Sequence record: MK054233.1
DNA: 15,548 nt
Reading direction: 5' to 3' (one strand)
The notes below the pieces were generated by a model that did no database searches, had not been told where the DNA came from, and was given only the letters and a program-made list of their open reading frames with translations. Each line of letters opens with the position of its first letter. Within the stretch, counting starts at the first letter, position 1. Position numbers and translations under genes: made by a program. This document shows positions 50-14,697 of the stretch, one piece after another.

Positions 50-226
50 TTGTGGGGGAATATCCCCCACTCCCCCTACTGCTATGTAAGTTTCTATTAT
101 CTTATCTAAAGGTGCAATGTAATTATGCCTTTGCTTACCGCCATCATCCTTCTCTATTAAGTAAACATAATACTTTCCTTTAATCTCTTTTACATAGAAT
201 TTAGAATTAACGTAAAAGGAAGGCAT
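1..226 (-). CDS. int: Integrase N-terminal part (intN); not in the supplied ORF track
   Basis: Manual translation from ATG at 226: MPSFYVNSKFYVKEIKGKYYVYLIEKDDGGKQRHNYIAPLDKIIETYIAVGGVGDIPPQRRGRDLNPGQGLDRPP. No stop codon; it reads through att and joins 15548 in frame (226+791=1017 nt, 338 aa). Confidence 0.92.
   Translation of the reverse strand, partial: MPSFYVNSKFYVKEIKGKYYVYLIEKDDGGKQRHNYIAPLDKIIETYIAVGGVGDIPPQRRGRDLNPGQGLDRPP
52..70. repeat. Hairpin/palindrome flanking att on the right
   Basis: GTGGGGGA-ATA-TCCCCCAC. Confidence 0.75.
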
Positions 227-249
227 TCTAAGAATGTTAAGTAACGGGG

Positions 250-259
250 GTTTAAATAC
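250..259 (-). promoter_or_regulatory. TATA box of a leaderless integrase transcript
   Basis: Minus strand reads GTATTTAAAC, ending about 24 nt before the int ATG at 226. The same 10-mer lies upstream of the F93-like gene (4255-4264). Confidence 0.65.
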
Positions 260-309
260 TCATTCTAATAGAACGATCAGCGTGGAGTTGAAAGAAGACG
301 GCAAAGATT

Positions 310-682
310 CCTCACTTTTGCGAAAAACTGAATATGTGATACTTAGCAACTGTGAGGCTTTGGAAAATTTGTAATTGTATAACTGCTCACTAATTTATAC
401 AAGAGATACCCCTGTTTTGGGGGTATATCTAGAATAAATTAGTGAGGGTTGAGAAATTTGCATATTTTCCCGGCGGTCACTAATTTTTAGAAGAAACTGC
501 CAAAAAAAGAGGTCTACTTTAAACCCAATCTACAAAAGTTTAAATCAAATTTACAAAAGTTTAAAGTAGACCTACTCCAGAAAAAGTTGCTTGCAAAAAT
601 TAGTGAGGGTTGAGAAATTTACAGGGGACACCTCTTCCAGAAAAAGTTTCTTCTAAAAATTAGTGAGGCTTTGGAAAATTTG
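310..682. repeat. Non-coding array of nested direct and inverted repeats; candidate replication origin
   Basis: Identical 24-mer AAATTAGTGAGGGTTGAGAAATTT at 436-459 and 597-620. Identical 20-mer at 352-371 and 663-682. Perfect 22-bp IR at 477-498/645-666 and 15-bp IR at 510-524/559-573. Tandem 14-mer TACAAAAGTTTAAA at 531-544 and 552-565. 60-bp period unit at 571-620/631-681. The repeats are directly visible; the origin role is inferred. Confidence 0.85.
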
Positions 683-721
683 AAAATTTATAAGTGGTCG
701 CTGTTTTTTACTAGCATCTGT

Positions 722-732
722 CAAAAAATGAG
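722..732 (-). terminator. T-tract terminator of the leftward operon
   Basis: Minus strand CTCATTTTTTG begins about 10 nt after the stop at 742. Confidence 0.5.
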
Positions 733-741
733 GTGTCAGTA

Positions 742-1044
742 TTACCTTGAAAAAGCGTCGTTAAACTTCTTCTTAATTCTTAATAAACTATCTAGGTGTT
801 TTAATTCGAGTTCGTCAACAAGTAGCACTTTACCGTCTTTGAGCCTCAAAATATAGTAAATTTCATTTTCCTCTCTTTTCCACCCTATTATCTCATAGCT
901 GTCATCCGGTTCCATGTAACGAAATATCGGCGGGTCTACAGTCCTATCGATGTAAAGAAACGCCAAATGTAAACACTCTTTAGCCCTTTCTATCGTTTTC
1001 TCGTTAGCGATTATCCCGTCAAACTCTTTACAGGAACTCGACAT
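742..1044 (-). CDS. Hypothetical protein (~100 aa), last gene of the leftward operon
   Basis: Overlaps the helicase stop. A GGTGA SD motif precedes the ATG at 1044, which I prefer to the track start at 1053. Confidence 0.75.
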   Translation of the reverse strand: MSSSCKEFDGIIANEKTIERAKECLHLAFLYIDRTVDPPIFRYMEPDDSYEIIGWKREENEIYYILRLKDGKVLLVDELELKHLDSLLRIKKKFNDAFSR

Positions 1045-2626
1045 ATTCCTCACCGCCTACCATCTTGTGGTTTACTAAGCCCCTTTCTTCGGCCCATTTT
1101 AGTACTTTTTCTGCAATCTCCTCACCGAGTATGCCATAAAATTCGCTGATCGTGAACTGCTTCCCCTTTAACTCTTTGTAAATTTCTGCCATGTTACCCG
1201 CAAACGTCAAATCGCCGTTACCATCCCTCTCTTCTTTATAACCGTTCACGACAAGGTCTAATACCTTTTGTCCGAATTCATTACGCCTCCATTTATTCCT
1301 ATTCGCTTTGTCCTTGTCAAGGTCTACCAGCCCTTTACGTGATAGGTTGTAGAGCCATGCCTTTGCTGTCTCTGTATCGACCTTGAGTCTCATTGCTATA
1401 GTCTTCGTTTCTTCGAATTCGGTACTGGTAGCCTGTAACGCTTTCAGTTCGACACTCGTTAGCCCTACCGCTGATACTAGGAAGTACCTCAATAGCTTTT
1501 GTGAGAAAAGTGAGTAAACTTCATCATCAACTACTTCTTTCCCTAACAACGATGCAAATATCTTCATAACTTTTAGGCCTTGGTCGTAAACTCTAAACGC
1601 GTACTGGTTATACTCCGTTATCACTTTCTTGAACTTCATGGCTATTTCTTTGGGTAACTTGACACTCCTCGGTGTATAGTACATCCATGCTATAGCCAGG
1701 TATTTTGTCACGGGGTCATATTCAAACGCGTTATCGCCCCTCTCTGCTATCTTCTCATATATCTTGTCAGTATCACCCCTTTCCAAGTCTAAGGCAACTG
1801 TCAAAAACCTACTCATTATCTGCGTCACTTGGTCGTTACTGTAGTCGATGTTAACAGCAGTGCTGACTACTGATGGCGGGTAGTCAACAGTACCGTAGTT
1901 AGTACCTATTTCGCCGTCACCTGTTTTCGCTGTTAAATTCGCAAGTCTACCCTCAGTCATTAAAATGCTCAACTCCTTAAACGCCTCAATGTCAATTGTC
2001 TCGACAATGAACAAACAGCGGTTTTTTAGCAACTTGCCGTTATCGTTGAACGCAAGGTAACTAAGGGCTTTCCGCGTCAGGTTTGACACCCATAACACGG
2101 CTCCATATCCTTCTTTTAGACTAAACATGTTGACGATACTCTTTACTGCTGAAGACTTCCCTGCTCCTGCACTCCCTAATACAAGTACACCAATTTTAGG
2201 AAGTCCTTCGTAAAAAGCAGACTTAATGGCTATCAATGTCAAAAGTTTCACTTCATCATCTCCTATATGCCATTTTTCCGATTGTCGTAAGAACCATGAT
2301 ATAGGGTCTTTTCTCAGTTCTTCCCACTGTTCCGGGAATTCCTCCATTACCCATTCCTGTAAAGGTTTTTCTACCGTATTTTCCGCTAACACTTGTCTGA
2401 CAAACTCGTTGAATTTCTCTTTTTCCCTCTTTATTGATGTACACCCTCCTCTTTTGAACGTCCCTTCCGTTATAGGATATGCTGTTTCTTTTCCGTCTTT
2501 AATATATCTGTAACTCGGTACGATGTAAACTATGCCGTCGTCAATCGTGGCATAAGCGTCTTCCTCGTTTATTTCCACTTCGATCTCGGCGTTTACACAC
2601 TCACTATCATATTGGTACCTCTTCAT
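1028..2626 (-). CDS. MCM-like AAA+ ATPase, putative replicative helicase, with C-terminal winged-helix domains (532 aa)
   Basis: Walker A GSAGAGKS; Walker B variant CLFIVE; a LMTEGRLANLTAK...PPSVVSTA segment like the MCM PS1-hairpin/sensor-1 region; arginine finger MSRF; wHTH-like TIAMRLKVDTETAKAWLYNLSRKGLV. GGAGGT SD and ATGA coupling to the upstream gene. Confidence 0.8.
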   Translation of the reverse strand: MKRYQYDSECVNAEIEVEINEEDAYATIDDGIVYIVPSYRYIKDGKETAYPITEGTFKRGGCTSIKREKEKFNEFVRQVLAENTVEKPLQEWVMEEFPEQWEELRKDPISWFLRQSEKWHIGDDEVKLLTLIAIKSAFYEGLPKIGVLVLGSAGAGKSSAVKSIVNMFSLKEGYGAVLWVSNLTRKALSYLAFNDNGKLLKNRCLFIVETIDIEAFKELSILMTEGRLANLTAKTGDGEIGTNYGTVDYPPSVVSTAVNIDYSNDQVTQIMSRFLTVALDLERGDTDKIYEKIAERGDNAFEYDPVTKYLAIAWMYYTPRSVKLPKEIAMKFKKVITEYNQYAFRVYDQGLKVMKIFASLLGKEVVDDEVYSLFSQKLLRYFLVSAVGLTSVELKALQATSTEFEETKTIAMRLKVDTETAKAWLYNLSRKGLVDLDKDKANRNKWRRNEFGQKVLDLVVNGYKEERDGNGDLTFAGNMAEIYKELKGKQFTISEFYGILGEEIAEKVLKWAEERGLVNHKMVGGEEYVEFL

Positions 2627-3042
2627 TTTGACCTCCTTAGCTCGATAACCGGCTTATCGAAAATCACGCGTTCGCAGTTGGCTTTATCGAAACCGAGACC
2701 GAGTTCCTCTAACTTCTTCTCAATTTCTTCGATATTTTCCTTTAACTGTTGTCTCCTTTTGCCTTTTACGTCATTTAAGGGGCATCTGGCATTAAAGCAC
2801 CATTTAGCGTCTGAACACATTTCAGGTGTGCCGTCATCTAACGGTGGCTGAATAATAATATCATTAATAACTAAAGGTGCTAGGGGGTCATTATTAATAA
2901 ACGCTATACCTTTTTTGTAAGTGCAATACCCTATACTGTACTTCCTATTACCAAACCTCAAGACGTTGACATACCATATTATTTTATGGTGGTATTTTTC
3001 GGGGTGTGTCCACAAGTCCTTAATGTATTCGTGGAGATCCAT
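2623..3042 (-). CDS. Hypothetical protein with a Cys cluster (C-x5-C-x4-CP), possibly metal-binding
   Basis: 139-aa ORF with GGGGT SD, coupled within the operon; motif MCSDAKWCFNARCPLN. Confidence 0.85.
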   Translation of the reverse strand: MDLHEYIKDLWTHPEKYHHKIIWYVNVLRFGNRKYSIGYCTYKKGIAFINNDPLAPLVINDIIIQPPLDDGTPEMCSDAKWCFNARCPLNDVKGKRRQQLKENIEEIEKKLEELGLGFDKANCERVIFDKPVIELRRSK

Positions 3043-3045
3043 CGT

Positions 3046-3552
3046 TTACCCCTTTAGTTTTGGTTTAGCCTTTTTCGCTTCTTCTACCCTTTCTTCTGTT
3101 TTCTCTTCTGTCTCTTTCTCCTCCTCTTCTTGTCCTTCGCCGTCTAACACTAGTATCTCGTCGTAGAACGTCTTATTCTGCTTCTTAGACACCTTGATTT
3201 TTAGTTTTGTACCCTCAGTAATCTCTTTGTTCTGCCATGCGTCGTAGAGTACTTCATAAGCCCTACCTGTTAGCTTCATAATCGCTTTGCCTCCTAACTC
3301 TTGGGCGTCATATTTCTTCGGCTTTACAACTTCATCACCGTCTTCCGTCTTCGTAACGACTTTCTCCGTGACGCTCTCAAACTTTCCGCTTACCGGCTTT
3401 ACGATAATACTGTAGTCTTCGATCTTCTTCACTGTACCGTCTTTCAACGCTATTTCTCTCTCAACGGCCTTTGGTGATTGCAGCACTTCTACGGTTACTT
3501 CGTCGAACGGCTTAACAATCGGTAACCTTTCCCTTTTCATTAATACTTTCAT
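3046..3552 (-). CDS. Putative ssDNA-binding protein (beta-rich core with acidic/charged tail)
   Basis: Alternating hydrophobic beta-strand pattern; tail GEGQEEEEKETEEKTEERVEE; located upstream of a helicase. The gene is solid; the function is inferred. Confidence 0.6.
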   Translation of the reverse strand: MKVLMKRERLPIVKPFDEVTVEVLQSPKAVEREIALKDGTVKKIEDYSIIVKPVSGKFESVTEKVVTKTEDGDEVVKPKKYDAQELGGKAIMKLTGRAYEVLYDAWQNKEITEGTKLKIKVSKKQNKTFYDEILVLDGEGQEEEEKETEEKTEERVEEAKKAKPKLKG

Positions 3553-3734
3553 GCGTTAACACCCTCCTTTAATACCTCTTGTCTCTTCTTGTCGATATAC
3601 CCTCTGCTTAATGCTTCAATGATTAAGATCTCAATTGCATCTGTTAGAGTTAGCTTTTCTTGTTTAGCTAAAAAAACGAATTTTTCTTTAATTTCACGAT
3701 CTAATTTTATTCCTACATACTCTCTCTCTTTCAT
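3549..3734 (-). CDS. Ribbon-helix-helix (CopG-like) regulator, 61 aa
   Basis: MKEREYVGIKLDREIKEKFVFLAKQEKLTLTDAIEILIIEAL fits the RHH pattern. The track start at 3788 runs through the promoter; ATG at 3734 sits at leaderless distance from the TATA box. Confidence 0.8.
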   Translation of the reverse strand: MKEREYVGIKLDREIKEKFVFLAKQEKLTLTDAIEILIIEALSRGYIDKKRQEVLKEGVNA

Positions 3735-3746
3735 GGCCAATTTATA

Positions 3747-3786
3747 TTTAAACAACAAAAGCATAAAAGTTTTTTGGTGTTTAAAC
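3747..3786 (-). promoter_or_regulatory. T5-type early promoter (leftward)
   Basis: Minus strand ACCAAAAAA-CTTTTATGC (BRE plus TATA); 36/40 identical to the reverse complement of 4281-4320. Confidence 0.75.
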
Positions 3787-3795
3787 ATAATTAGG

Positions 3796-4233
3796 CTAAG
3801 ATTTCAAGAATCTTTGTAAATATTTCAAGTCGTCTATAATCCTCTTTTTAGCCTCTTCATCAAGTATCCCCAATCTTGTAAATATTTCAACATATGGAAT
3901 CAAGATTGTCTGTCCCGCTAACGCCATTGCTATAAGTATCTTGTTAGGGTCTGCCTCTTTTTTCATTCGTTTATAGGTCTCAATACCCGGTTTCAGCGAT
4001 ATCGCGAAAAGTTTACCCTTTTCCGTGAGATATATCTTTTTTTCCCCTTTCTCTTGTTTCTCTTCTATAAAGCCTTCCTGAATAAGAAATTTCTTAGCGT
4101 CATAAAAAGTGGCGGTGGACATGGGGAAATCCGCGTTTACTTTCTTATATAAATCATATGTGGCTATCCCTTCATTATCATATATGTAGACTAATACTAT
4201 CGCTTCAGGGTAGAAGAAAGGAGTACTTTTCAT
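3796..4233 (-). CDS. f93: Winged-helix (MarR/PadR-like) regulator, SSV1 F93 homologue with a C-terminal extension
   Basis: N-terminus MKSTPFFYPEAIVLVYIYDNEGIATYDLYKKVNADFPMSTATFYDAKKFLIQEGF closely matches SSV1 F93 as I recall it. Start at 4233 fits the TATA spacing; 4242 is the alternative. Confidence 0.88.
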   Translation of the reverse strand: MKSTPFFYPEAIVLVYIYDNEGIATYDLYKKVNADFPMSTATFYDAKKFLIQEGFIEEKQEKGEKKIYLTEKGKLFAISLKPGIETYKRMKKEADPNKILIAMALAGQTILIPYVEIFTRLGILDEEAKKRIIDDLKYLQRFLKS

Positions 4234-4280
4234 ATATCGCATATATAATTTATAGTTTAAATACCAAACGTTTTAGTGTT

Positions 4281-4320
4281 GTTTAAATACCAAAAAGTTT
4301 TTATACTTTTGTTGTTTAAA
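4281..4320 (+). promoter_or_regulatory. T6-type early promoter (rightward)
   Basis: ACCAAAAAG-TTTTTATAC (BRE plus TATA) upstream of 4342; inverted copy of 3747-3786. Confidence 0.75.
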
Positions 4321-4341
4321 CAATAGATAGAGGGTCAAAAA

Positions 4342-4650
4342 ATGGTTGAACCCCAATACCAGGAAAAAGTTTTGGGTGAAGTTAGTTTGAATTTTTTTAT
4401 TCGTTCCGTAGAGGTTGAGGGAAGACATAACTTCTACTTCAAACTATACGTGAGAATAAAAGATGATAAGAATGGAACTGAAATCGATCAGCAGTTTCTA
4501 AGTCCAGAAGAGTATGAAACCCACCGCATTTTGAAAGACATCGAGAAATTGTATAATTTAGCCCGCTTTTCGCAAAATGAAAAATTGGCACAAGGGGCGA
4601 AAGAAGAGATTCTAAAATTAATTGCGTTACTGCTTTCGCGTGTAAGTTGA
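4342..4650 (+). CDS. a100: SSV1 A100-like early protein
   Basis: First gene after the T6-type promoter; MVEPQ start and KEEILKLIALLLS end resemble A100; GAGGGT SD. Confidence 0.7.
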   Translation: MVEPQYQEKVLGEVSLNFFIRSVEVEGRHNFYFKLYVRIKDDKNGTEIDQQFLSPEEYETHRILKDIEKLYNLARFSQNEKLAQGAKEEILKLIALLLSRVS

Positions 4651-4658
4651 GGTGGACG

Positions 4659-4793
4659 ATGATGAGGAGTAGACGTGAAAAGATGTTAAAAATATTCGAG
4701 AAGATCCTAGACGAAACAGATGATATAGAAGATCTTGAGCAACTAATAGAGATAATTCAAGATTATATATATCGTGCCGGTGAGGGGGAATGA
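4659..4793 (+). CDS. Small acidic helical protein, 44 aa (below the track cutoff)
   Basis: MMRSRREKMLKIFEKILDETDDIEDLEQLIEIIQDYIYRAGEGE; GAGGTG SD; ATGA overlap with the next ORF. Confidence 0.8.
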   Translation: MMRSRREKMLKIFEKILDETDDIEDLEQLIEIIQDYIYRAGEGE

Positions 4794-4969
4794 ATATTAG
4801 ATCTTTATATAGGCTTTCATTTGCTATAGAGAATCTATTAGATGATATTGTAGATGGGAATGTTGATGACGACAATGAAGTATTAGAGATTCTTCTTGAC
4901 GCTAAACGCTTAACAGATTTGCTTTCTCAAGAGTTGAATAATTATATCATAAGGGTGACAAAGGGATGA
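4790..4969 (+). CDS. Small acidic protein, 59 aa (below the track cutoff)
   Basis: MNIRSLYRLSFAIENLLDDIVDGNVDDDNEVLEILLDAKRLTDLLSQELNNYIIRVTKG; ATGA overlaps at both ends. Confidence 0.82.
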   Translation: MNIRSLYRLSFAIENLLDDIVDGNVDDDNEVLEILLDAKRLTDLLSQELNNYIIRVTKG

Positions 4970-5166
4970 AGGCAAGAGTGGAATACATTAAACTCCCGAA
5001 ATCTTATAACCCTCGTAAAGACTGGGACATGGACGTGATTTCATTCAAATTACCTCCAGAGCTTAAGGCAAAATTAGATATTGTTGCTCACAAAAGAAAA
5101 GTTTCAAGAAGTGAACTGATCAGGATTGCGATTCAGGAGCTTCTGAAGGATGAAGAGGTGCAGTGA
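4966..5166 (+). CDS. c80: RHH/CopG regulator, SSV1 C80 homologue
   Basis: MKARVEYIKLP...VISFKLPPELKAKLD...SRSELIRIAI. Confidence 0.88.
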   Translation: MKARVEYIKLPKSYNPRKDWDMDVISFKLPPELKAKLDIVAHKRKVSRSELIRIAIQELLKDEEVQ

Positions 5167-5409
5167 ATGTATAGATGCCCACTCTGCGGGTTCAAAACCA
5201 TCAGGTTGTTTGCATTAAAACAACATGCACGCCATGTCCATGTGTTAACTGTTTGCCCAGTTTGCAAGAAGGAATATCTTAATATTTATCAACATTTCTA
5301 CGTCAATGCGTACAGCGACAACAAACATCTAGTTCTGTGCTATTTATTTACAACAAATAAGCTCAAGAGTTTCGCGAAACAAAAAGTGAAAGAACTCTTA
5401 AGGTGTTAG
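5167..5409 (+). CDS. a79: C2H2 zinc-finger protein, SSV1 A79 homologue
   Basis: CPLC...HARHVH and CPVC...H motifs; follows c80. Confidence 0.88.
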   Translation: MYRCPLCGFKTIRLFALKQHARHVHVLTVCPVCKKEYLNIYQHFYVNAYSDNKHLVLCYLFTTNKLKSFAKQKVKELLRC

Positions 5410-5411
5410 AT

Positions 5412-5714
5412 ATGATGATTTATGATATACTATTATATTATGGGTTTCAGTTCAATGACTATTGGACAACAATATTAGGTACCAAAGTTGGCGGAAGAGA
5501 AGCAAATCTTGTAGCGAGGTTGTTTATGAAAAACAGATTAACATTAGCTATCTATAAATTTGATCTCGCTACAGTGGCTCTATTATTAGCTTTCATGTTA
5601 GATAACGTAAAAATGATACAAACGTTCCTACTTATTGTTGATGTTGTTGAATGCCTTGTAACACTAAACAATACTCTTACGATATATAGGCGTAAGAAGG
5701 TGAGAGCAAAATGA
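5412..5714 (+). CDS. Small membrane protein (position of SSV1 C102b; DUF5658-like motif)
   Basis: Hydrophobic segments with DYWTT-x5-GGREAN; AGGTG SD before ATG 5412 (the track uses GTG 5403). Confidence 0.75.
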   Translation: MMIYDILLYYGFQFNDYWTTILGTKVGGREANLVARLFMKNRLTLAIYKFDLATVALLLAFMLDNVKMIQTFLLIVDVVECLVTLNNTLTIYRRKKVRAK

Positions 5715-5890
5715 GGAAATTATGGGTGGTTTCAGCAAAAGACCCTTACGGTGATATTGTTTATCTGAAAATAACGCCTAAAAAGTCTACTGCGAAACGG
5801 TATTTGAAAGAGTGCAAAGAGATTTTCAATAGTTGTGAAATGGTACTTGGTGAGTTCTACACTCTCGATGAGGCTGAGGGGAAAATATAA
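5711..5890 (+). CDS. Hypothetical protein, 59 aa (below the track cutoff)
   Basis: MRKLWVVSAKDPYGDIVYLKITPKKSTAKRYLKECKEIFNSCEMVLGEFYTLDEAEGKI; ATGA and TAATG overlaps fill the operon gap exactly. Confidence 0.82.
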   Translation: MRKLWVVSAKDPYGDIVYLKITPKKSTAKRYLKECKEIFNSCEMVLGEFYTLDEAEGKI

Positions 5891-6261
5891 TGTCAGGTAA
5901 TAAAAATTACCTGAGTAATCGTAAAACTTTAGGGATTCATGTGTCTGCAGAAGAACTAAAACGGTACCACTCTTTATCTGCAGAACAGAAAAGGTTGTTA
6001 AGGATAATCGTTAAGGTGCTTATTTATAACCCTGAATTGCTTAACGAAAGTTCTTATCTTTACAAATTACTCACCACAAAAGCTATATCGCCTTACGTTT
6101 GCCCCCTTTGCTTAATACCGTTTTCCTCTTCCGTTAGTCTGAAACAACACATTAGATATGCTGAACATACGACAACTTGCCCGGTGTGCGGTAAGGAGTT
6201 TGCAAAGACTGACGCACTCTTAGACCATGTTTGCAAAAAACATAATATCTGCGTTAGTTAG
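5890..6261 (+). CDS. b129: Tandem C2H2 zinc-finger DNA-binding protein, SSV1 B129 homologue
   Basis: YVCPLCLIPFSSSVSLKQHIRYAEH and CPVCGKEF...HVCKKH. Confidence 0.93.
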   Translation: MSGNKNYLSNRKTLGIHVSAEELKRYHSLSAEQKRLLRIIVKVLIYNPELLNESSYLYKLLTTKAISPYVCPLCLIPFSSSVSLKQHIRYAEHTTTCPVCGKEFAKTDALLDHVCKKHNICVS

Positions 6262-6270
6262 GTGATGTTG

Positions 6271-6603
6271 ATGAATAGGCTAAAGGTCTTATGGTTCATC
6301 TTCATTTTAGGTAATATTTATGATGTCGTAATATCGGCAATAGCGTGGAGGTATGGGGCTATGGAAATAAATCAAACTTTAATTGATTTAGGCTTATGGT
6401 ATGGTAACACATCATTTTTTTCAGTAATGGAAGCATTTGTTGGCGTCAAATTAATACTAATAGTTGGAGTTTATTGGTTACTAAAATTATTCGAAAAACT
6501 TGGAGTTAGTAAGTATGAATGGTTGGGATTGGCCCCATTCGCCATTGAAACAATTTTTGTTTTAATATATGATACTTATAATTTCGTAATGCATCTTTTT
6601 TAG
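6271..6603 (+). CDS. Three-helix membrane protein (DUF5658-like motif)
   Basis: Hydrophobic segments with YDVVIS-x5-YGAMEIN; GGTGA SD before ATG 6271. Confidence 0.8.
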   Translation: MNRLKVLWFIFILGNIYDVVISAIAWRYGAMEINQTLIDLGLWYGNTSFFSVMEAFVGVKLILIVGVYWLLKLFEKLGVSKYEWLGLAPFAIETIFVLIYDTYNFVMHLF

Positions 6604-6616
6604 GCCCTTTATAAAG
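6601..6616 (+). promoter_or_regulatory. Late promoter box (T3-type)
   Basis: TAGGCCCTTTATAAAG, ending 23 nt before ATG 6640; identical copies at 7799 and 11847. Confidence 0.85.
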
Positions 6617-6639
6617 TCTACCTTCTTTTTTCGCTTACA

Positions 6640-7539
6640 ATGAGGAAGACCCTTCTAGCTCTTCTAACCCTATCCCTAGCGTTACTAATGTTAACAACAC
6701 CTACCGGTGCTATAACTGCAAGTCAGTTAGGTGCAAATCAAATAGTATTTACGACTAATCAATTCTATATTGCCGGCGTTTCATATAGCAATGAGTGGTT
6801 TTCAGCCTTCTTCCATGGTTGGAACCCAATCGTATATGATGTTGAGGGTATCTATTTACGTAACATCTCTTTAGGGTACGTGAACAACCCTAATGGTAAT
6901 GGCTATAATGAAATATTTATAGGTATAGGGCTTAGTGCATATGCCACCGGGACTTTAGGAGGTGCCGGAACGCCGGGACAAATTATAAACAATGCAGTGT
7001 TGGCGGGCTTATATATTGTAACTACCAGTAGTGGATCCTATTATTATTATGTAGGCGCTGAAACATTACAAAATGGTAATCCTATAATTGCTAAAGATTC
7101 ACCACCCATAACCGGTTCTCTTCCAATAAGTGTGCAAACATATTTATATGATGATGGGAACGGAACTGCCACTGCGTATATAACATTATATTATTCATAT
7201 GGTCTACTGACATATAGTTTCTACGTCCCATATCCTTTTAATCCTAGTCAAGGATATGCCTCATATTCTGCACTCACTTTAATTGGTGCGATATTGCAAT
7301 TACCATATATTAGTGGAGGGCTAACGAGTTTCGATTTTACCTATCAAAGTAACGGGCAAAACTATGAATGGCCGAATCAGGTAGCCTCTGGTACTCAGAT
7401 CATGGCAGGGGTTTATAACATATCAAGTTCCGTAAACGAGTTTACACAAGTAAGTCTGTATAACGGTTTCTTAAATAATGGTTTGTGGTCTTACATCTAT
7501 AGTTTTACCTATCCATATCCTACCACACACGCACTCTAA
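6640..7539 (+). CDS. Secreted protein of the SSV1 A291 / SSV9 B310 locus (candidate killer toxin)
   Basis: Signal peptide MRKTLLALLTLSLALLML resembles that of A291; same position between b129 and vp4; body rich in G/S/T/Y/N. Confidence 0.75.
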   Translation: MRKTLLALLTLSLALLMLTTPTGAITASQLGANQIVFTTNQFYIAGVSYSNEWFSAFFHGWNPIVYDVEGIYLRNISLGYVNNPNGNGYNEIFIGIGLSAYATGTLGGAGTPGQIINNAVLAGLYIVTTSSGSYYYYVGAETLQNGNPIIAKDSPPITGSLPISVQTYLYDDGNGTATAYITLYYSYGLLTYSFYVPYPFNPSQGYASYSALTLIGAILQLPYISGGLTSFDFTYQSNGQNYEWPNQVASGTQIMAGVYNISSSVNEFTQVSLYNGFLNNGLWSYIYSFTYPYPTTHAL

Positions 7540-7555
7540 GGCAAAATTTTTTATC

Positions 7556-7566
7556 CTTTCTTTTTT
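7556..7566 (+). terminator. T-tract terminator after the A291-like gene
   Basis: CTTTCTTTTTT follows the stop at 7539. Confidence 0.55.
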
Positions 7567-7568
7567 AT

Positions 7569-7793
7569 ATGTTTAATCAAATGCCAACCGAGTCTATAAC
7601 AAACGTAACAAACGAGCCTATAATACCGTTTACGGTTAAGACTCATAACCCCTCCCCACCATCGCCGTTCCAAGTGGTTTATGATTACATCCCTACAATA
7701 ATTCTATCAATAGGAATAACCCTTTTAGTTTTAACAATCTATGTATCACCATCCCTCAGAATAGCATTAAGAAAATTCTTCGTAAGACGTTAA
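7569..7793 (+). CDS. Small single-pass membrane protein (start at 7569 or 7581)
   Basis: Pro/Thr-rich N-terminus, TM segment IILSIGITLLVLTIYV, basic tail RIALRKFFVRR; fills the gap before vp4. Confidence 0.75.
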   Translation: MFNQMPTESITNVTNEPIIPFTVKTHNPSPPSPFQVVYDYIPTIILSIGITLLVLTIYVSPSLRIALRKFFVRR

Positions 7794-7798
7794 CAGAT

Positions 7799-7814
7799 TA
7801 GGCCCTTTATAAAG
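7799..7814 (+). promoter_or_regulatory. Late promoter box for the vp4 operon
   Basis: TAGGCCCTTTATAAAG, ending 22 nt before ATG 7837. Confidence 0.85.
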
Positions 7815-7836
7815 CCATTTAATTTTTTATCGCTTA

Positions 7837-10272
7837 ATGAAGTGGGGACTATCTTTACTACTACTAATCCTCTTACTCTCACCTATCTTAGCAAACGGTG
7901 TTATAACCGGGCCTCATCCATACTTAGATGGCGGAGGAGGTTTTACCGGGCCTTTCTTCAAATACTCTAACACAATTCAAGTTGGATCCTCTACTTTTTC
8001 TTCTAAATACAATGGTTCAACCCTTTCTACCGCACCATGGCTTAACCCGACTTACGTTTCGATATACAACACTTACTACCTTCAAGTTTTACCGAACCAA
8101 GAGTACATTTCAAATAACGTATCTCTTTCTCTTTCATCATCACAAATCGCTCTAAACGTCACATGGTTATTAGCGTCTTCCGGTAATTCCGGATCCTACG
8201 GTTCAATCGCCATAGGCTACGGTGTTAATTTTCCTTCAGGGTTTACGGGTAACTATGCACCCGCACCACCTTACGCCTCTGATGGGATTGTAGTTTATCT
8301 GGAAAAAGGGAGTTTCCCAACATATAGAATATTCGTATACTTTGATGGTGTGAAACAGTTAAACGTATCTGTGGGATCAATCAGTGTTGGGCAACAAATA
8401 GGTTTAGGGTTCTGGTACTTACCCGCTACAAACCAACTTTACGTTTATTACTATAACGGTACTCTAAAGACTTTTTCAATAACACCGGGTCAAGTTATCA
8501 ATAACCAATTTTATCCTCTTTCATTGAATACTATAAATAGTAATTATGTCATTGATGCTCAAAATGTTGGGCCGGGGTACGGTTACGGGCAGTGGGTGTT
8601 AATATCATACTCAATCTTCCAAACTAAGACATATAGTGCAACACTTAGCTATACATCTGTTATTTTAGGCAATGGTATTCAGGCTTTGGCGGGATTTACT
8701 GGTGCGTACAACCCTTTAAACGTGTCCACTAATGTGACCTCTTGGTCTGTTGTAGGTATCGTTAAGGTTGTAAATTATAGTGTTTCAAACTCACAATATT
8801 CATTGATCGGTAGTGTGAGTTACTTAACATCAACAAATACTGTTTACTTCATTCTTAATAGTATTTACCCCACATATAGTGTAAACACATGGTATCTTAA
8901 CGTAACGTTAGAGTTTCAGTTTGTAACGCCCTCAAGTACAGTCTACAAGAATATTACAATTCCGATTTTTGACGGGGGATTTGCGGTTCTTGTCCAAGTA
9001 AGCTTACCGCAATCATCATACCTATCAGGTCAAACTATCAGTGTTTCTAATTCTACAACTATTGAATATCCCTCTAATGCGGGATATTCGTTAGCCTTAA
9101 AACCGGTTGTAGAAATTAATATACAAGGTCTCACTAACGGCTTTGTGCCATTACCTTACACGGTTACTGCGAACGTTAACGCACAAACAACATATTATTA
9201 CGTTATAAACATACAATTCGGTCAATTCTCTCTAGGTGGTCAAACTGGTACAATAACAATATACCCCGTCAGCCAATTACCCGTTATATTCGTTTCACAA
9301 TATCCCACATCAGTTACGGCTGGTACTAAGGTGACTATAACTTTTCAATTCACTCTTAACACACCCGTTTCAAATGTGACAATGTCAGCGTTTAGCCAAT
9401 CCACTACGACTTTCGCATGGACTTACGCGTCTCTTTTATCGTCATCATCACTTGTGGAGTTTCAGGGGTACTGGCTATCAGCGAATGACGGAATCATAAT
9501 CATTACGCAAAGTCAAAACTATTTAATTCCCTTCAATTATGTAGGTTTGACGTTTTATAACAACAGTGTTAACACAATTCAGATTAACGTTGTAAATAAC
9601 GCGTTACAACTGAATGTTAATAATAACGTGCTAAACTTAGCTAACTCATCTAAAGTTATCGGTATAGGATTCTATTACGGTGCGGGGAAGTTAGTGTTAA
9701 ACTGGTTCTTTGTTAGCGGTATCGTTTTGCAGTCTGCCACTGCAAATCAGGCGTATACAATCTTAACGGGTACAAGTCTGAACACATTGACACAGTATAC
9801 GAATGGATACACTAACGCGTCAGGGTTTGGACAGGTAACCGTGACACTGACTGACACTCCTTACGAGTTAGTGGAAATCTACTGGGGTGGTCTGCAGAAA
9901 TACGTAATCCTAAACATTAGCGTCACTCAGCCTACTACAACTACAACTACGACTGTGAATACTTCAACATTAAACTACAACTACACTAATCCGTTTACTA
10001 ACAACATATCGCCTACCTCAACCCTTTACAACTTTAGCAATATGCAGCCATGGGCTGAACTAGTAGGGATAGTCATTGTAGTCGTCGTTACGTTACTAGG
10101 GTGGAAGTTTGGTGGAAAAGGTGGTGCTAGTGGTGGTGTAGTTATGGGGTTAATCGCCGTGTCCTATCTAGGTTTAGTGCCATGGTATATCTTCTACATC
10201 TTCATCTTTGGCATAGCGTTACTATTAGCGAAAATATTCGTAGATAGGTTTATGGGTGGTGAGGAGGAATGA
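7837..10272 (+). CDS. vp4: VP4 tail/host-adsorption glycoprotein (SSV1 C792 type), 811 aa
   Basis: Signal peptide; N-terminal GPHPY...GGGFTGPFF; many N-x-S/T sequons; Thr-rich linker; C-terminal TM helices; followed by b78. Confidence 0.93.
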   Translation: MKWGLSLLLLILLLSPILANGVITGPHPYLDGGGGFTGPFFKYSNTIQVGSSTFSSKYNGSTLSTAPWLNPTYVSIYNTYYLQVLPNQEYISNNVSLSLSSSQIALNVTWLLASSGNSGSYGSIAIGYGVNFPSGFTGNYAPAPPYASDGIVVYLEKGSFPTYRIFVYFDGVKQLNVSVGSISVGQQIGLGFWYLPATNQLYVYYYNGTLKTFSITPGQVINNQFYPLSLNTINSNYVIDAQNVGPGYGYGQWVLISYSIFQTKTYSATLSYTSVILGNGIQALAGFTGAYNPLNVSTNVTSWSVVGIVKVVNYSVSNSQYSLIGSVSYLTSTNTVYFILNSIYPTYSVNTWYLNVTLEFQFVTPSSTVYKNITIPIFDGGFAVLVQVSLPQSSYLSGQTISVSNSTTIEYPSNAGYSLALKPVVEINIQGLTNGFVPLPYTVTANVNAQTTYYYVINIQFGQFSLGGQTGTITIYPVSQLPVIFVSQYPTSVTAGTKVTITFQFTLNTPVSNVTMSAFSQSTTTFAWTYASLLSSSSLVEFQGYWLSANDGIIIITQSQNYLIPFNYVGLTFYNNSVNTIQINVVNNALQLNVNNNVLNLANSSKVIGIGFYYGAGKLVLNWFFVSGIVLQSATANQAYTILTGTSLNTLTQYTNGYTNASGFGQVTVTLTDTPYELVEIYWGGLQKYVILNISVTQPTTTTTTTVNTSTLNYNYTNPFTNNISPTSTLYNFSNMQPWAELVGIVIVVVVTLLGWKFGGKGGASGGVVMGLIAVSYLGLVPWYIFYIFIFGIALLLAKIFVDRFMGGEEE

Positions 10273-10508
10273 CTGACGCAATTAGTTTAGCCCTTCAAAC
10301 GGGTTTAGGGCCAGTTATTGGCGTCGTCATTATCATTTCTCTAATGGGGTTGACGTACAAAATTGCGGGAAGGATCCCCGCTATCATCACGGGAATAGCG
10401 TCAACATTTGTATTGATTTTTATGGACTTTATACCCGTTTATTGGGGTATAGGGATTATATTTGGTCTGATAGCCGGGATGGTATTAGGTGGGAAAGATG
10501 GGTACTAA
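10269..10508 (+). CDS. b78: Membrane protein, SSV1 B78 homologue
   Basis: MTDAISLALQTGLGPV..., hydrophobic, coupled to vp4. Confidence 0.88.
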   Translation: MTDAISLALQTGLGPVIGVVIIISLMGLTYKIAGRIPAIITGIASTFVLIFMDFIPVYWGIGIIFGLIAGMVLGGKDGY

Positions 10509-11001
10509 GCTAATAGTCTACGTGTTAATTTTCGATATCTTTCTTTCGCTAATGGTAGGTGCTTACGGTGGAATCTCACCACCGTCAATACCACCGATAC
10601 CTAGCTATAGTTTCGATCAAGCTTTAGCATCATCAATCGTGTGGACTGTAGGATGGCCACCAATCACTTTATGGGGATCCGTGACACTTATTCCACCGTT
10701 TTCGATATTGGGGGCTAATTTTCCGGGGCTAACTTTACCGGGTGTAACGATTCCGGGCGTAACACTGTTTAGTATATCGTTTTCATGGCTAGCACCCCTC
10801 TTCTACATCTCTGGTTGGATAATCTGGATATTCCAAACGGTAGCATCAACAGTAGGATATTTGTTAAGTATTTTTACAAGTAGTGTAGCGTTACTATCGT
10901 CAGTACCGGTGGTAGGGCCATTCCTTACTGCGTTTATACTTATTGTTAATTTCATTCTCATTTGGGAACTGGTGAAACTGATAAGGGGTTACGGGCCATG
11001 A
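10498..11001 (+). CDS. c166: Membrane protein, SSV1 C166 homologue
   Basis: MGTKLIVYVLIFD..., Pro/Gly-rich and hydrophobic; expected position. Confidence 0.88.
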   Translation: MGTKLIVYVLIFDIFLSLMVGAYGGISPPSIPPIPSYSFDQALASSIVWTVGWPPITLWGSVTLIPPFSILGANFPGLTLPGVTIPGVTLFSISFSWLAPLFYISGWIIWIFQTVASTVGYLLSIFTSSVALLSSVPVVGPFLTAFILIVNFILIWELVKLIRGYGP

Positions 11002-11339
11002 CTTATAACGCGAATGAGATAAGGGCAAAAATCCTAAGAAAGAAGATACTGGAGCTTATCGCTGAAAACTACGTACTCTCTGCGTCGCTAATCTCTCACA
11101 CACTGCTTTTGAGCTATGCCACCGTTTTGCGTCATCTCAGGATCCTAAATGAACACGGCTATATCGAATTGTACAAAGAAGGGCGAACGTTATATGCAAA
11201 AATTAAGGATAATTCGCGGAAAATTCAGATTCTGAATTCAGAACTAGAGGGGTTTAAAAAGCTTAACGAAAAGACCTTAGTGACCAAGAATGAGGGCAGT
11301 CGCGGTATTGTCAACACCAAAGAAACTAAGAAGGGCTGA
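10998..11339 (+). CDS. b115: ArsR-like winged-helix regulator, SSV1 B115 homologue
   Basis: [30 protein letters not shown]; ATGA overlap at 10998. Confidence 0.9.
11245..11289 (+). promoter_or_regulatory. T1/T2-type capsid promoter inside b115
   Basis: AGAGGGGTTTAAAAAG with the TATA box at 11252-11259; resembles the SSV1 T1/2 promoter. Confidence 0.7.
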
Positions 11340-11559
11340 GGCAACTAACATAGGTGTACTGTTAGGGTTATTCATCTTCATCCTTATAGGAATAGTATTA
11401 TTGCCCGTTATCGTTTCACAAGTAAACAACCTCACGAGTGGTACCGCACCCGCGGTTACGGGTACTAATGCTACATTATTGAACTTGGTACCGCTATTCT
11501 ATATACTTGTATTGATAATAGTCCCCGCGGTAGTAGCGTATAAGATCTACAAAGACTGA
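11290..11559 (+). CDS. vp1: Major capsid protein VP1 precursor
   Basis: A 16-aa leader then [23 protein letters not shown] gives the known 73-aa mature VP1; sequons NLT and NAT. Confidence 0.98.
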
Positions 11560-11570
11560 GGGGTTGAAAG

Positions 11571-11849
11571 ATGGAGTCAAATGTTAAGGCAATTATTTTT
11601 TTGTTTGTCTTTATCCTCATCGGGGTTGTCCTATTCCAACCAATTTATAATGAAGTAGTTTACGTTACGACATCAGGAACTTACACTACTATTACCTCAG
11701 GTACTCTAGTTACATCATCGTTTATACCTAACCCGCAATATGTAGGGTCTTCAAACGCTACTGTTGTATCATTAGTACCGGTCTTCTACTTACTTGTGTT
11801 GATAATAGTACCGGCCGTGATTGGTTACAGATTGTACAAGAGTGAGTAG
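11571..11849 (+). CDS. vp3: Minor capsid protein VP3
   Basis: VP1 paralogue with two TM helices, 92 aa, directly after vp1. Confidence 0.96.
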
Positions 11850-11862
11850 GCCCTTTATAAAG
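11847..11862 (+). promoter_or_regulatory. Promoter box (T9-type) for the a82-b251 operon
   Basis: TAGGCCCTTTATAAAG, ending 22 nt before ATG 11885; the T-tract at 11869-11877 can also terminate the capsid transcript. Confidence 0.85.
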
Positions 11863-11884
11863 CCATATTCTTTTTTTCCTCTTG

Positions 11885-12133
11885 ATGAGTGCGTTAGGCG
11901 ATGTAATCTATATTTTAGGTATTTTAATCCCACTCCTAGGATTGGTCGTAAGGAACTATCTAGTTGAATTGCTAGGTTTTGTAATGGGTACGATTGCGTT
12001 CTTAGCGTTTGTGCAAAATTATACAGACATAACATTTTCAGCGTCAAACTTCTATTTGGCGTTACTACCTTTAGCGTTTGGCTTAATGGACTTTGCCTTC
12101 TTCTTTAACTGGCTTAAGGAGGAAAGAATATGA
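11885..12133 (+). CDS. a82: Membrane protein, SSV1 A82 homologue
   Basis: 82 aa, three hydrophobic segments, expected position. Confidence 0.88.
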   Translation: MSALGDVIYILGILIPLLGLVVRNYLVELLGFVMGTIAFLAFVQNYTDITFSASNFYLALLPLAFGLMDFAFFFNWLKEERI

Positions 12134-12366
12134 AGGTGATACATAATGATATACGTTTCAGAAAATTACGCATTGGACATACTTATTTTCGATATAACTA
12201 TGCTCATTACTGCACTACTATTCAGAAAGCCAAAGCCCAAACCCGTGAAATCAACATTAGACCACAAAACCATAAGGCGATTAGGGTATTACACCGTAGG
12301 AGCCGGGGTATTAACGCTCTTCTTAGGCCATTTGGGTTTTTACGAAAGTTTTTGGGAATACCTTGA
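12130..12366 (+). CDS. c84: Basic protein overlapping a92 (SSV1 C84 position)
   Basis: ATGA-coupled to a82; overlapping c84/a92 is known in SSV1. Translation is not shown by the sequence. Confidence 0.5.
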   Translation: MKVIHNDIRFRKLRIGHTYFRYNYAHYCTTIQKAKAQTREINIRPQNHKAIRVLHRRSRGINALLRPFGFLRKFLGIP

Positions 12367-12430
12367 AGGGTTGATGTTAGATGCTTTCCTATTTTACATT
12401 GGGTTGAGAATGGTGATCCAAGGTGAGTGA
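12146..12430 (+). CDS. a92: Membrane protein, SSV1 A92 homologue
   Basis: GGTGA SD; hydrophobic segments around a basic loop; coupled to b277. Confidence 0.82.
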   Translation: MIYVSENYALDILIFDITMLITALLFRKPKPKPVKSTLDHKTIRRLGYYTVGAGVLTLFLGHLGFYESFWEYLEGLMLDAFLFYIGLRMVIQGE

Positions 12431-13250
12431 TGGGAAACTACTTCATGCGTGGGAAGAAGAGCTTAAGAAAGCCCAAACGGTAGATGAGTTAAGGCAAAAA
12501 TATGAAGAAATGCAAAAGCAGATAGCGGATAGCAAAACGCTTAAACGCTTATACAAAGTTTATGAAAAGAGAGAATTCGAAATAAAGAAAGCACAGTTTG
12601 AGCAGTTGAAGGCTGAACTTTCAAAGAAGAAGAAGAGGTTCAAGAAAGAGAAGGTTGACGTTAGGGTTAAGGTAGTTAAGAAATGGATCAATTCGCGTTT
12701 GTTTACGGCTGAGCATTATGTGGCAATGCTGCAGCAATCAAAAGACGGGCTGCAGCTGCTATTTCTCAGAAGAGTGAAATTGGTTGAAAACCAGGGCTAT
12801 TTAATGTTGGAAAATAGGAAGATGAGAAAGTCATGGGTCTTAAACGCTGAACCGTTGTTACTTGAAAAGAGTAAATTCCCGTTTGGGCGGAAATTTGTAG
12901 CCGTACACTTTGTCCTACCAGACTATCCGTATACGCTTAACTTAACGGTTGACGAGAAGATTAGGCAATTAACGCTGAAGAGTCTTAACGCCCCTCAGAT
13001 TATTCACTCTATTGTTAGGACAAAGTTCTTTGAAGCACTTGCAAAAGTCGGTGGTGGGCCGGATTTTACAATGTTAGTTATCGGCGTTATAATGGGGATA
13101 GGGATAGGGGTAGCCGTAGGTTTCGGAATAGCAAACGCTAACTTAACGCATTTACTCTCTCAACACGTGACTAATAGCACAGTAACGCATGTTACATCAT
13201 CAACAACATCACCTAGTTTCACGATTCCAAGTAACAGTACAAAGGGGTGA
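12423..13250 (+). CDS. b277: Core protein, SSV1 B277 homologue (coiled coil plus C-terminal TM helix)
   Basis: MSDGKLL..EEELKKAQ start; INSRLFTAEHYVAMLQ; Gly-rich TM segment. Confidence 0.92.
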   Translation: MSDGKLLHAWEEELKKAQTVDELRQKYEEMQKQIADSKTLKRLYKVYEKREFEIKKAQFEQLKAELSKKKKRFKKEKVDVRVKVVKKWINSRLFTAEHYVAMLQQSKDGLQLLFLRRVKLVENQGYLMLENRKMRKSWVLNAEPLLLEKSKFPFGRKFVAVHFVLPDYPYTLNLTVDEKIRQLTLKSLNAPQIIHSIVRTKFFEALAKVGGGPDFTMLVIGVIMGIGIGVAVGFGIANANLTHLLSQHVTNSTVTHVTSSTTSPSFTIPSNSTKG

Positions 13251-13255
13251 GTTAA

Positions 13256-13720
13256 ATGGCTAAGAAGACAGAAGTAGAACAATTACAGAAAGAGAATAAT
13301 GAGTTAAAGAAAAAGTTAGCAGAGATAGAGAGTTTACTAAATAATAATAAGGAATTAGATGAGGATGAAAAGTTACAAGAGATAGAGAACCCCTACACGG
13401 TCACGAATAGGGCAATAACCGAGTTAGTAGAACCTAAGGACACAATGTTTTACCTTTCGGGGTCTCAGATATCACTGATTTTGACGGCGTTTGAGTTTGC
13501 AAGACTCCCTAGTTATTTCGGGGAAGAACCAGTTGTCGAGTTAGCGGAATTCGCTCACAAACTTAAGCACTATTTAGTTTCAAAGAGTGGAAGAGGAAGA
13601 AGGGATATACTGAGGGTACTTAGGGTGTCATCAGGTCAATCTAGGGAAAACGTGAATAAGAGTTTGATTAGTAAAATATTAAAGGGGACTGATATGGATG
13701 CCAAAGAAGAAGAAGGTTAA
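13256..13720 (+). CDS. a154: Core protein, SSV1 A154 homologue
   Basis: IENPYTVTNRAITELVEPKDTMFYLSG; 154 aa; position before b251. Confidence 0.92.
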   Translation: MAKKTEVEQLQKENNELKKKLAEIESLLNNNKELDEDEKLQEIENPYTVTNRAITELVEPKDTMFYLSGSQISLILTAFEFARLPSYFGEEPVVELAEFAHKLKHYLVSKSGRGRRDILRVLRVSSGQSRENVNKSLISKILKGTDMDAKEEEG

Positions 13721-14435: not shown

Positions 14436-14438
14436 CGT

Positions 14439-14450
14439 TGTTTTTCTTTC
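14439..14450 (+). terminator. Pyrimidine-tract terminator after b251
   Basis: TGTTTTTCTTTC immediately follows the stop. Confidence 0.6.
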
Positions 14451-14540
14451 AATTCTACACGTGTAAGGTACTTGAAACGGGTCTAGTTTTATAGCGGGGG
14501 CAGTGTTTGCTTATTCCTAATATATATTATGTAAACCGCA

Positions 14541-14557
14541 AAAGAAAGGCTTATTAG
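14541..14557 (+). promoter_or_regulatory. Candidate promoter for the 31-aa ORF
   Basis: Purine-rich BRE AAAGAAAGG plus CTTATTAG, ending 23 nt before ATG 14581; same spacing as the other leaderless promoters. Confidence 0.5.
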
Positions 14558-14580
14558 CTTTTTAAATATATGATAAAAAT

Positions 14581-14676: not shown

Positions 14677-14697
14677 GTTACATGCACCCTCTCTTAC

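Follow-up and report, generated by a model that had tools for sequence, protein, structure and literature searches.

The window analyzed here is a stretch of DNA of 15,548 bp that is 100% identical to GenBank entry MK054233.1, the Sulfolobus spindle-shaped virus (SSV) strain NL03.C02.05.SSV. This is a circular alphafusellovirus, reported as an integrated element of S. islandicus from Nymph Lake, Yellowstone (PMC6452263). All of its annotated genes (33/33) carry the label 'hypothetical protein'. We focused on five minus-strand genes that run from 3734 to 742, hereafter the module, and on the repeat array that lies directly behind them. These features are as follows:

3549-3734, minus strand: ribbon-helix-helix (RHH) gene, 61 amino acids (aa); called in GenBank as 3549-3788, 79 aa
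3046-3552, minus strand: p168, a 168-aa protein of unassigned fold (phrog_21681)
2623-3042, minus strand: p139, a 139-aa protein with five cysteines
1028-2626, minus strand: MCM-like AAA+ ATPase of 532 aa, putative initiator/helicase
742-1053, minus strand: p103, a 103-aa protein, last gene of the module
347-738, no strand: iteron-like array, candidate replication origin, from repeat analysis

From the RHH gene to p103, successive genes overlap by 4 nt, are separated by 3 nt, overlap again by 4 nt and finally overlap by 17-26 nt. An earlier note on this DNA, made from the letters of the sequence, had described five coupled leftward genes that end at the largest non-coding and most repeat-dense segment of the genome, and this description held. 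The 515 bp between the end of p103 (742) and the start of the integrase gene (226) form the longest stretch without a substantial gene (367 bp if an annotated 46-aa open reading frame (ORF) at 234-374 is counted), and every other intergenic gap in the genome measures at most 90 bp. Moreover, 347-738 contains the genome's three largest families of direct repeats, together with most of its long inverted repeats.

Single-sequence searches of Pfam, NCBIfam and the PDB with the 532-aa ATPase returned only weak, uninformative matches and no match to Pfam MCM. The family is small, since only 36 relatives at E-values of 1e-3 or lower were retrieved when 1.8 billion representative proteins were searched exhaustively with a profile. 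Family conservation and the final AlphaFold2 (AF2) model are based on an alignment of 27 sequences; this run replaced an earlier one on a shallow alignment (68-100% identity), in which the AAA+ core had a predicted local distance difference test score (pLDDT) of 57. The final model (pLDDT 84.9, predicted template-modelling score 0.76) comprises a beta-rich N-terminal domain (1-60), the AAA+ core (~120-280), a helical lid, a MarR/TrmB-type winged helix (~386-460) and a second winged-helix-like domain (479-532), so that two winged-helix-like domains are present at the C-terminus. In the alignment we observed an MCM-type signature, I-x-G-x-x-x-x-K followed by 'SS', with G122 and K127 conserved in 26 and 24 of the 27 members, respectively. 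The Walker A motif is found at 151-158 (GxxGAGKS, that is G151-x2-G154-x-G156-K157-S158; K157 in 26/27) and Walker B at 205-212 (LFIVETID; family consensus LFI(E/V)(Q/E)xD). A sensor-1 strand is also present, the motif 'MTEG' stands at the place of 'AMEQQ' in MCM, and an arginine finger is formed by S272-R273-F274 (S/N-R-F in the family; R273 in 26/27). A pre-sensor-1 beta-hairpin is predicted at 228-247, its two strands (228-236 and 239-247) lying after the Walker B helix and before the sensor-1 strand. The AF2 model contains no helix-2 insert, helix 185-197 being continuous and strands 177-180 and 204-207 having no hairpin between them, and the protein has no Cys4/His motif.

The best Foldseek match of the model in the PDB was 8ouw_2 (E = 2.1e-10), and the top 50 were dominated by eukaryotic (MCM2-7 subunits) and archaeal MCM proteins. 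The archaeal ones were 8q67, 6mii, 4r7z and 3f8t, with a target-normalised template-modelling score of 0.63 for the PfMCM-AAA structure 4r7z; RuvB and BchI were also among the matches. As an alternative we considered an Orc1/Cdc6 initiator, which has a similar domain order (AAA+, lid, winged helix), but this candidate was rejected because of the pre-sensor-1 hairpin and because not one Orc1/Cdc6 chain was present in the Foldseek top 50. At the profile level, the Pfam MCM P-loop gave sub-threshold matches in 4 of the 27 members (best family E = 1.7e-6), while the archaeal MCM winged helix was matched by 1 and the TrmB winged helix by 9 of them. The relatives that were scanned individually, as well as ORF735 of the plasmid pSSVi, scored 16.5-19.4 bits against Pfam MCM (PF00493; cutoff 23.3), and only in the Walker A region. 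The winged-helix profile matched MarR/TrmB strongly and AspA and TubR weakly. The motifs, the AF2 model and the top structural matches thus agree with the MCM-like assignment proposed in the earlier note, and they identify the protein as a predicted MCM-like, pre-sensor-1-hairpin AAA+ ATPase of the ring-translocase type. We name it MCM-like rather than MCM because of the absent helix-2 insert and the sub-threshold Pfam scores. With MCMs, including those of archaeal mobile elements (pTAU4-type RepA-MCM plasmids, TPV1, BJ1), it shares IxGxxxxK, Walker A and B, the pre-sensor-1 hairpin, an SRF-type arginine finger and a C-terminal winged helix, and its best structural matches are MCMs. However, sequence identity to MCMs is only ~12-15%, the small N-terminal domain shows no Zn-finger signature, and the family is classified apart. 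Its precomputed Pfam domain, on the ATPase and on its relatives, is PF27228 (MTBMA_p00010_2nd), a name that presumably refers to a Methanothermobacter plasmid gene.

The array is built from units with the core AAATTAGTGAS, i.e. AAATTAGTGA(G/C). Its 10-mer AATTAGTGAS is present in five exact copies, all within 386-667, and nowhere else in the 15.5 kb. Five full units of ~30 bp and two degenerate ones can be delimited, and these are mostly arranged in tail-to-tail pairs:

436-460, 597-621 and 657-681, plus strand: full iteron units
374-398 and 464-488, minus strand: full iteron units
347-371 and 690-714: degenerate iteron units

The AT-rich centre of the array (510-573) consists of a perfect 15-bp inverted repeat (510-524/559-573) that encloses two 21-bp tandem repeats.

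The same units were found in six elements whose ATPases are 68-100% identical to that of the window. Altogether, 32 units follow one consensus, WGTAAAAATTAGTGAGSNNTKAGAAAATT, in which positions to the left and to the right of the anchoring heptamer are conserved: 5 in the window, 5 in MK054223, 4 in the metagenomic element L010, 5 in the metagenomic element L011, 4 in the Acidianus manzaensis provirus L012 and 9 in the IMG/VR contig L133. In all six the units are located immediately downstream of the p103 homologue, and the non-coding DNA around them has diverged. This is the arrangement of an iteron origin, in which at least three copies of a ~20-30-bp unit adjoin the (here putative) initiator gene, with the core kept and the flanks divergent. 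SSV-K1 has an analogous array at the same place, built from the variant unit AATTAATTAGGAGAAAGT. The array therefore travels with the module in every element in which it was compared, as the earlier note had proposed to check. By blastn it was detected in only 14 GenBank SSVs, all of which have the ATPase. For IMG/VR, a loose iteron pattern gave only chance single matches and a paired-site pattern was used instead. This pattern retrieved a single multi-copy array, in the module-bearing contig L133; the other nine matches, all in contigs without the module, each comprised one or two clusters of inverted repeats with 2-4 core motifs. Within these two collections the array was not found in close relatives that lack the operon. 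In the ~0.8-0.9 kb downstream of the module of SSV7, ASV1 and Sulfolobales virus YNP1 (SYV1) we found no ATTAGTGA-type or comparable array.

The linkage between array and module does not depend on their orientation. In MK054223 the genes for p168, p139, the ATPase and p103 are inverted as a unit together with the array relative to the backbone, between the integrase gene and T6; compared to the window, its module genes are 96.6% identical and its array 70-88%. Strand comparison implies the same inversion in four sister genomes. We also looked for covariation between the recognition helix of the winged helix and the iteron sequence, but this was uninformative because SSV-K1 alone has a variant iteron and its ATPase gene is frameshifted in the wing.

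Homologues of the ATPase are encoded by several known fuselloviruses: A460 plus C78 of SSV9 (SSV-K1), which are 82% identical to the window protein, and B471 of SSV7, C674 of ASV1 and gp57 of SYV1 (27-37%). The earlier note had assumed that SSV9, SSV7 and ASV1 possess only a Rad3-like helicase of another superfamily. This premise proved wrong, because in these viruses, as in SYV1, the ATPase gene is located immediately downstream of that XPD/DinG-type (Rad3-like) helicase gene (DEAD_2 plus Helicase_C_2). Their gene order is small repressor, p168 homologue, helicase, ATPase and small gene, and the block corresponds to the 'T5+' block of large ORFs (Goodman & Stedman 2018, PMC6080066). These 'T5+' viruses resemble the window in having an RHH gene, a p168 homologue, the ATPase and a small downstream gene, and SSV-K1 also has a repeat-rich non-coding region at the equivalent place. 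They differ in that the position between p168 and the ATPase is occupied by an XPD/Rad3-like superfamily-2 helicase rather than by the unrelated p139. In addition, the block of the window has the classical leftward T5 orientation behind an F-93-like gene, whereas theirs is divergent from the integrase gene. Across the relatives, the slot between p168 and the ATPase holds the XPD/Rad3-like helicase in SSV9, SSV7, ASV1, SYV1, L012 and L133, is empty in L010 and L011, and contains p139 in the window clade. The slot is thus interchangeable, and the conserved core of the module consists of RHH, p168, ATPase and p103.

One of the helicase-less elements, L010 (JGI 3300045864 Ga0496368_000409), has a VP2-like gene of fusellovirus type and a gene of the Sulfolobus_pRN family alongside the module and the iteron array. 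Its own genes are repeated with a period of ~10.6 kb, and it is therefore probably circular and small, perhaps a short fusellovirus or a hybrid of virus and plasmid.

Among the small proteins, the RHH protein alone matched Pfam RHH_1 at E = 0.054, which is weak. A profile of nine members matched, in the PDB, SvtR (2kel, 1.8e-4), NikR (5e-4), CopG (2.5e-3) and pRN1 ORF56 (0.056), as well as ParG, and this family profile makes the earlier assignment of the leading gene to the ribbon-helix-helix (CopG/SvtR-like) proteins credible. RHH genes are also found upstream in the operons of L008, an integrated element (DUF6290), and of L010 and L011 (RHH_9), and as ORF56 in pSSVi. Homologues in five other elements are 60-66 aa long and align from M19, i.e. 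the ATG at 3734. The GenBank call of 79 aa therefore probably starts too far upstream, its 18 additional codons (3735-3788) overlapping a promoter-like repeat, and the start at 3734 proposed in the earlier note appears the better one.

The p168 protein consists of a conserved core of ~135 aa and an acidic, low-complexity linker that varies in length, and its C-terminal KPKLKG is conserved. Its homologues are C158 of SSV-K1 (82%) and B204 of SSV7, A171 of ASV1 and gp54 of SYV1 (25-27%). It had been described as resembling a single-stranded DNA-binding protein (SSB), a proposal that found no support at the sequence level. Neither the single sequence nor an 18-sequence profile matched any Pfam, NCBIfam or PDB entry, so that no similarity to an oligonucleotide/oligosaccharide-binding fold was seen there, and hhalign against an Sso SSB sequence entered by hand gave a probability of 1.7%. 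The acidic linker does resemble an SSB tail, but the protein ends in the conserved basic KPKLKG, unlike the tips of SSBs. The slot protein p139 is known only from close relatives (13 clusters); comparisons that considered it as an XPD helicase remnant or as a homologue of gp56 of SYV1 were negative. The p103 gene always comes last in the module and has homologues in SSV-K1, L006, L010, L012 and L133, of which the SSV-K1 copy downstream of the ATPase is unannotated and interrupted; p103 matched no family or PDB entry.

A connection to plasmids became apparent from a tblastn search of PLSDB, in which the sole match to the ATPase was the 735-aa ORF of pSSVi (NC_013777), an integrative satellite plasmid of SSV1 and SSV2 from Saccharolobus solfataricus P2. 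By BLASTP the two proteins are 28% identical over 382 aa (E = 6e-31, residues 91-461), and the last 54 residues of the ATPase (479-532) are 56% identical (E = 2e-18; window 1028-1189 versus pSSVi 2387-2551). The homology thus spans the AAA+ core, the lid, the MarR-type winged helix and the last 54 residues. Because these ~54 residues are so much better conserved than the remainder (56% versus ~28%), they might form a constrained interaction surface, and we speculate that they contact a shared partner, either a component of the host replisome or a viral protein. In pSSVi the gene order is ORF56/CopG, ORF121, ORF735, so that a small RHH/CopG copy-control gene is located shortly upstream of ORF735 as it is in the window, and both elements are tied to SSV-type integrases and fuselloviruses. 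ORF735 differs in an N-terminus that is ~200 aa longer, and pSSVi has no homologue of p168, p139 or p103 and no ATTAGTGA iterons. Downstream of its rep gene (2563-2610) it contains instead a 12-bp inverted repeat, AATTTTTGCCGT/ACGGCAAAAATT, and a repeat of this type, with one mismatch in one arm (AATCTTTGCCGT), is found downstream of the ATPase gene at 8900-8946 in L008. This inverted repeat may be a different origin element for the plasmid branch of the family. More distant relatives of the ATPase were detected in plasmid-like integrated elements, namely L008, in which an RHH gene directly precedes the ATPase gene and a split SSV-type integrase is close by, and L009, which has a pSSVi-like pair of 121 and 675 aa; another distant relative is encoded on a 21-kb virus-like contig. 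ORF735 reportedly was predicted to be a large replication protein without the primase-polymerase (prim-pol) domain of pRN RepA. In the literature searched we found no functional study of the pSSVi-type ATPase family in replication.

A further comparison is the experimentally defined minimal replicon of pRN1, which consists of the orf56(CopG)/orf904 operon and 166 bp of downstream DNA carrying the origin (PMC4234260). By analogy the module has the same layout: a small RHH repressor, a large multidomain winged-helix replication protein and an essential cis element downstream of rep (PMC4234260), the counterparts in the window being putative. ORF904 differs in combining a prim-pol domain with a superfamily-3 helicase, whereas the window protein has no prim-pol domain and a MCM-like (superfamily-6-type) AAA+ core. 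On balance, it seems somewhat probable that 347-3790 is a plasmid-type (pSSVi/pRN-style) replication cassette in the variable (T5) region of an alphafusellovirus. More tentatively, we consider it possible that the ATPase and the ~30-bp iteron array form an autonomous initiator-origin pair, a portable cassette that would insert in either orientation and take up different cargo in its slot. From the predicted fold, the homologies and the linkage of array and module we infer how such a cassette might act. The RHH protein would autoregulate the operon. The ATPase would recognise the ~30-bp iterons downstream of the operon via its winged helix, assemble as an oligomer on the tail-to-tail site pairs and melt the AT-rich palindromic centre (510-573), acting as initiator and/or helicase, after which the host primase and polymerase would take over priming and synthesis. 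In this model p168 and p103 would be conserved accessory factors.

The earlier note had likewise read the locus as a plasmid-like replicon acquired by this virus. The homology to pSSVi ORF735 and the pRN1-type layout strengthen the first part of that reading, with replication as the presumed function; an acquisition unique to this virus is not what the relatives show. Its description as 'self-contained' was overstated, since the virus encodes neither primase nor polymerase nor clamp and has kept the core DnaA-like gene (13698-14435), and both facts also count against a replication cassette as such. Several further observations weigh against that interpretation. As noted above, the ATPase has no recognisable helix-2 insert and remains below the Pfam MCM threshold, and helicase activity is not assured. 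The isolated virus SSV-RH/SSV8 has a backbone that is 84-99% identical over 4323-14490 of the window, and yet its T5 operon is of the classical kind, the module is missing and just 25 bp separate the integrase gene from its neighbour. Nearly identical fusellovirus backbones thus occur with and without the cassette, which is an accessory to them and is not needed for fusellovirus replication in general. In SSV-K1 (NC_005361) the ATPase gene at 4001-5613 is annotated as two ORFs, A460 and C78, being split by a frameshift in the wing of the winged helix, although published work uses SSV9 as an infectious virus (PMC4453537). The frameshift is either a sequencing error or a real disruption; if real, it would speak for a dispensable protein. 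The adjacency of array and genes among related elements could also reflect co-inheritance rather than function. The replication role of the ATPase family is a prediction, as is the pSSVi assignment itself, reportedly made by Wang et al. in 2007. As for the AT-rich centre, 515-574 has 77% AT compared to a genome mean of 61% (standard deviation 6.7), which is ~2.3 standard deviations above that mean, and several segments are more AT-rich. GC skew was not used for origin calling because it is dominated by gene orientation, and it says nothing on the origin.

Three other explanations were weighed, each of which accords less well than a replication cassette with two observations, namely the ring-translocase features and the linkage of array and ATPase in either orientation. 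The first is a regulatory switch, in which the ATPase would be a winged-helix AAA+ transcription factor or remodeller and the repeats would be operators for neighbouring promoters (integrase, carrier or lysogeny state). The RefSeq label of the pSSVi homologue ('MarR family transcriptional regulator'), the strong MarR/TrmB-type winged helix of the ATPase, the small regulators around the operon (F-93-like protein and RHH protein) and the position of the array in the window, where it abuts the integrase upstream region, are consistent with such a role. However, the array is far from the integrase gene in five sister genomes and in SSV-K1 and tracks the module rather than any particular promoter, a trans-acting arginine finger and a pre-sensor-1 hairpin are traits of MCM/RuvB-type ring translocases, and the structural matches point to MCM and not to a specific family of AAA+ transcription regulators. 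We therefore regard a switch as unlikely. It is improbable that the array is a centromere-like or packaging site, bound by a small protein or by the winged helix with the ATPase as motor. Multi-copy inverted sites do resemble centromere arrays, AspA and TubR are matched weakly by the winged-helix profile and ParG by the RHH profile, and pSSVi, which has the ATPase family in common with the SSVs, is packaged by them (PMC3543421). Nevertheless, no ParA/Walker-box partition ATPase is present, pSSVi has no ATTAGTGA iteron, and SSVs without the array, such as SSV-RH, are packaged normally. Equally doubtful is a repair, recombination or anti-defence module in which the ATPase would work with the XPD/DinG-like helicase and the repeats would be recombination hot spots mediating inversions: the two genes do adjoin in SSV9, SSV7, ASV1, SYV1 and the A. 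manzaensis provirus, the helicase matches the PADLOC type IV DinG model at 6e-50 and the cassette occurs in two orientations, but ATPase and array persist without the helicase in the window clade, L010 and L011, PADLOC gave no convincing match for the module proteins of the window (only p168 to IetS, E = 0.0038), and the inversion boundaries are located outside the array, which is included in the inverted block.

The genes of the module are not new: GenBank already contains them for 15 or more sequenced SSVs, the block had been remarked on in 2009 and again in 2018, and plasmid replicons of the CopG-plus-Rep type with MCM-like Reps on archaeal mobile elements are a known kind of system. In the literature searched we did not find described the MCM-like assignment of this ATPase ORF family, its homology to the large ORF of pSSVi, the modular slot between p168 and the ATPase, or the conserved array of ~30-bp iterons that accompanies the module. 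The MCM-like nature of the family appears to be under-recognised, because a 2016 global survey of the replication proteins of double-stranded DNA viruses lists MCM-like helicases of archaeal viruses but does not name fuselloviruses in the main text (PMC4889955). None of the SSVs has an origin that has been characterised at the functional level, although 'Tori' of SSV10, at an equivalent position, was proposed as an origin (PMC6080066). The combination of a conserved cis-array with a MCM-like winged-helix ATPase therefore offers a concrete, clonable and testable origin/initiator hypothesis for a subset of SSVs that includes SSV9, already a laboratory system, and it makes the long-open question of the fusellovirus origin directly testable for one lineage. 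If correct, it would give the Fuselloviridae their first identifiable origin system, and fuselloviruses and their satellites would exchange whole replicons, as the ATPase family is shared with pSSVi. The ATPase also ties the variable T5 region of these SSVs to the replicon of the satellite plasmid pSSVi, and the module could yield a new compact replicon for Sulfolobus vectors.

The surroundings of the module and the remainder of the window contain further features:

3747-3787, minus strand: promoter-like segment upstream of the RHH gene, with TTTAAA boxes; arm of an inverted repeat
3796-4242, minus strand: F-93-type winged-helix regulator (Pfam F-93_WHD, E = 1.6e-29), directly upstream of the operon
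13698-14435, plus strand: core fusellovirus DnaA-like AAA+ protein, homologue of SSV1 B251 (phrog_5484, E = 1.7e-93)
227-345, minus strand: region upstream of the integrase gene; TATTTAAAC lies ~30 nt before its ATG (226)

The segment at 3747-3787 forms, with 4280-4320, a 41-nt inverted repeat of 90% identity. Both arms contain TTTAAA boxes and face outward, toward the RHH operon and a rightward T6-like operon, bracketing the F-93-like gene and a 51-aa ORF. By analogy to the conserved T5/T6 TATA boxes (PMC6080066), 3747-3787 is a putative promoter. The repeat looks like a duplicated early promoter, and it is a possible substrate for cassette inversions or exchanges among the sister genomes. 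Compared to SSV-RH, the whole integrase-proximal ~5.4 kb (14490-15548 plus 1-4322) is different, comprising the integrase gene (75-81% in patches), the array, the module with its RHH gene, the F-93-like gene and the 51-aa ORF, while the similarity given above covers the other 10 kb. The unit of exchange therefore extends beyond the replication module.

In the record the circle is opened at the att site, and the SSV-type integrase gene spans the record start on the minus strand (14758..226; Pfam Phage_integr_3, E = 2e-44). According to blastn, the region 227-345 is conserved in many SSVs with or without the module and hence is not part of it; the consensus reported for Tint is TWTTTAAC (PMC6080066). 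Bases 1-50 are tRNA-like and 100% identical to 49 nt within the integrase gene of SSV-K1; they are the attP core inside the integrase gene. ARAGORN called no tRNA in the window, because only a tRNA fragment is present at this site. Finally, an ORF of 299 aa at 6640-7539 is located shortly upstream of the 811-aa VP4-like gene, separated from it only by a 74-aa ORF (7569-7793). This is the T3 position, where DeWerff et al. (2021) mapped diverse SSV-encoded toxins that act on competing Sulfolobus cells (PMC8628083).

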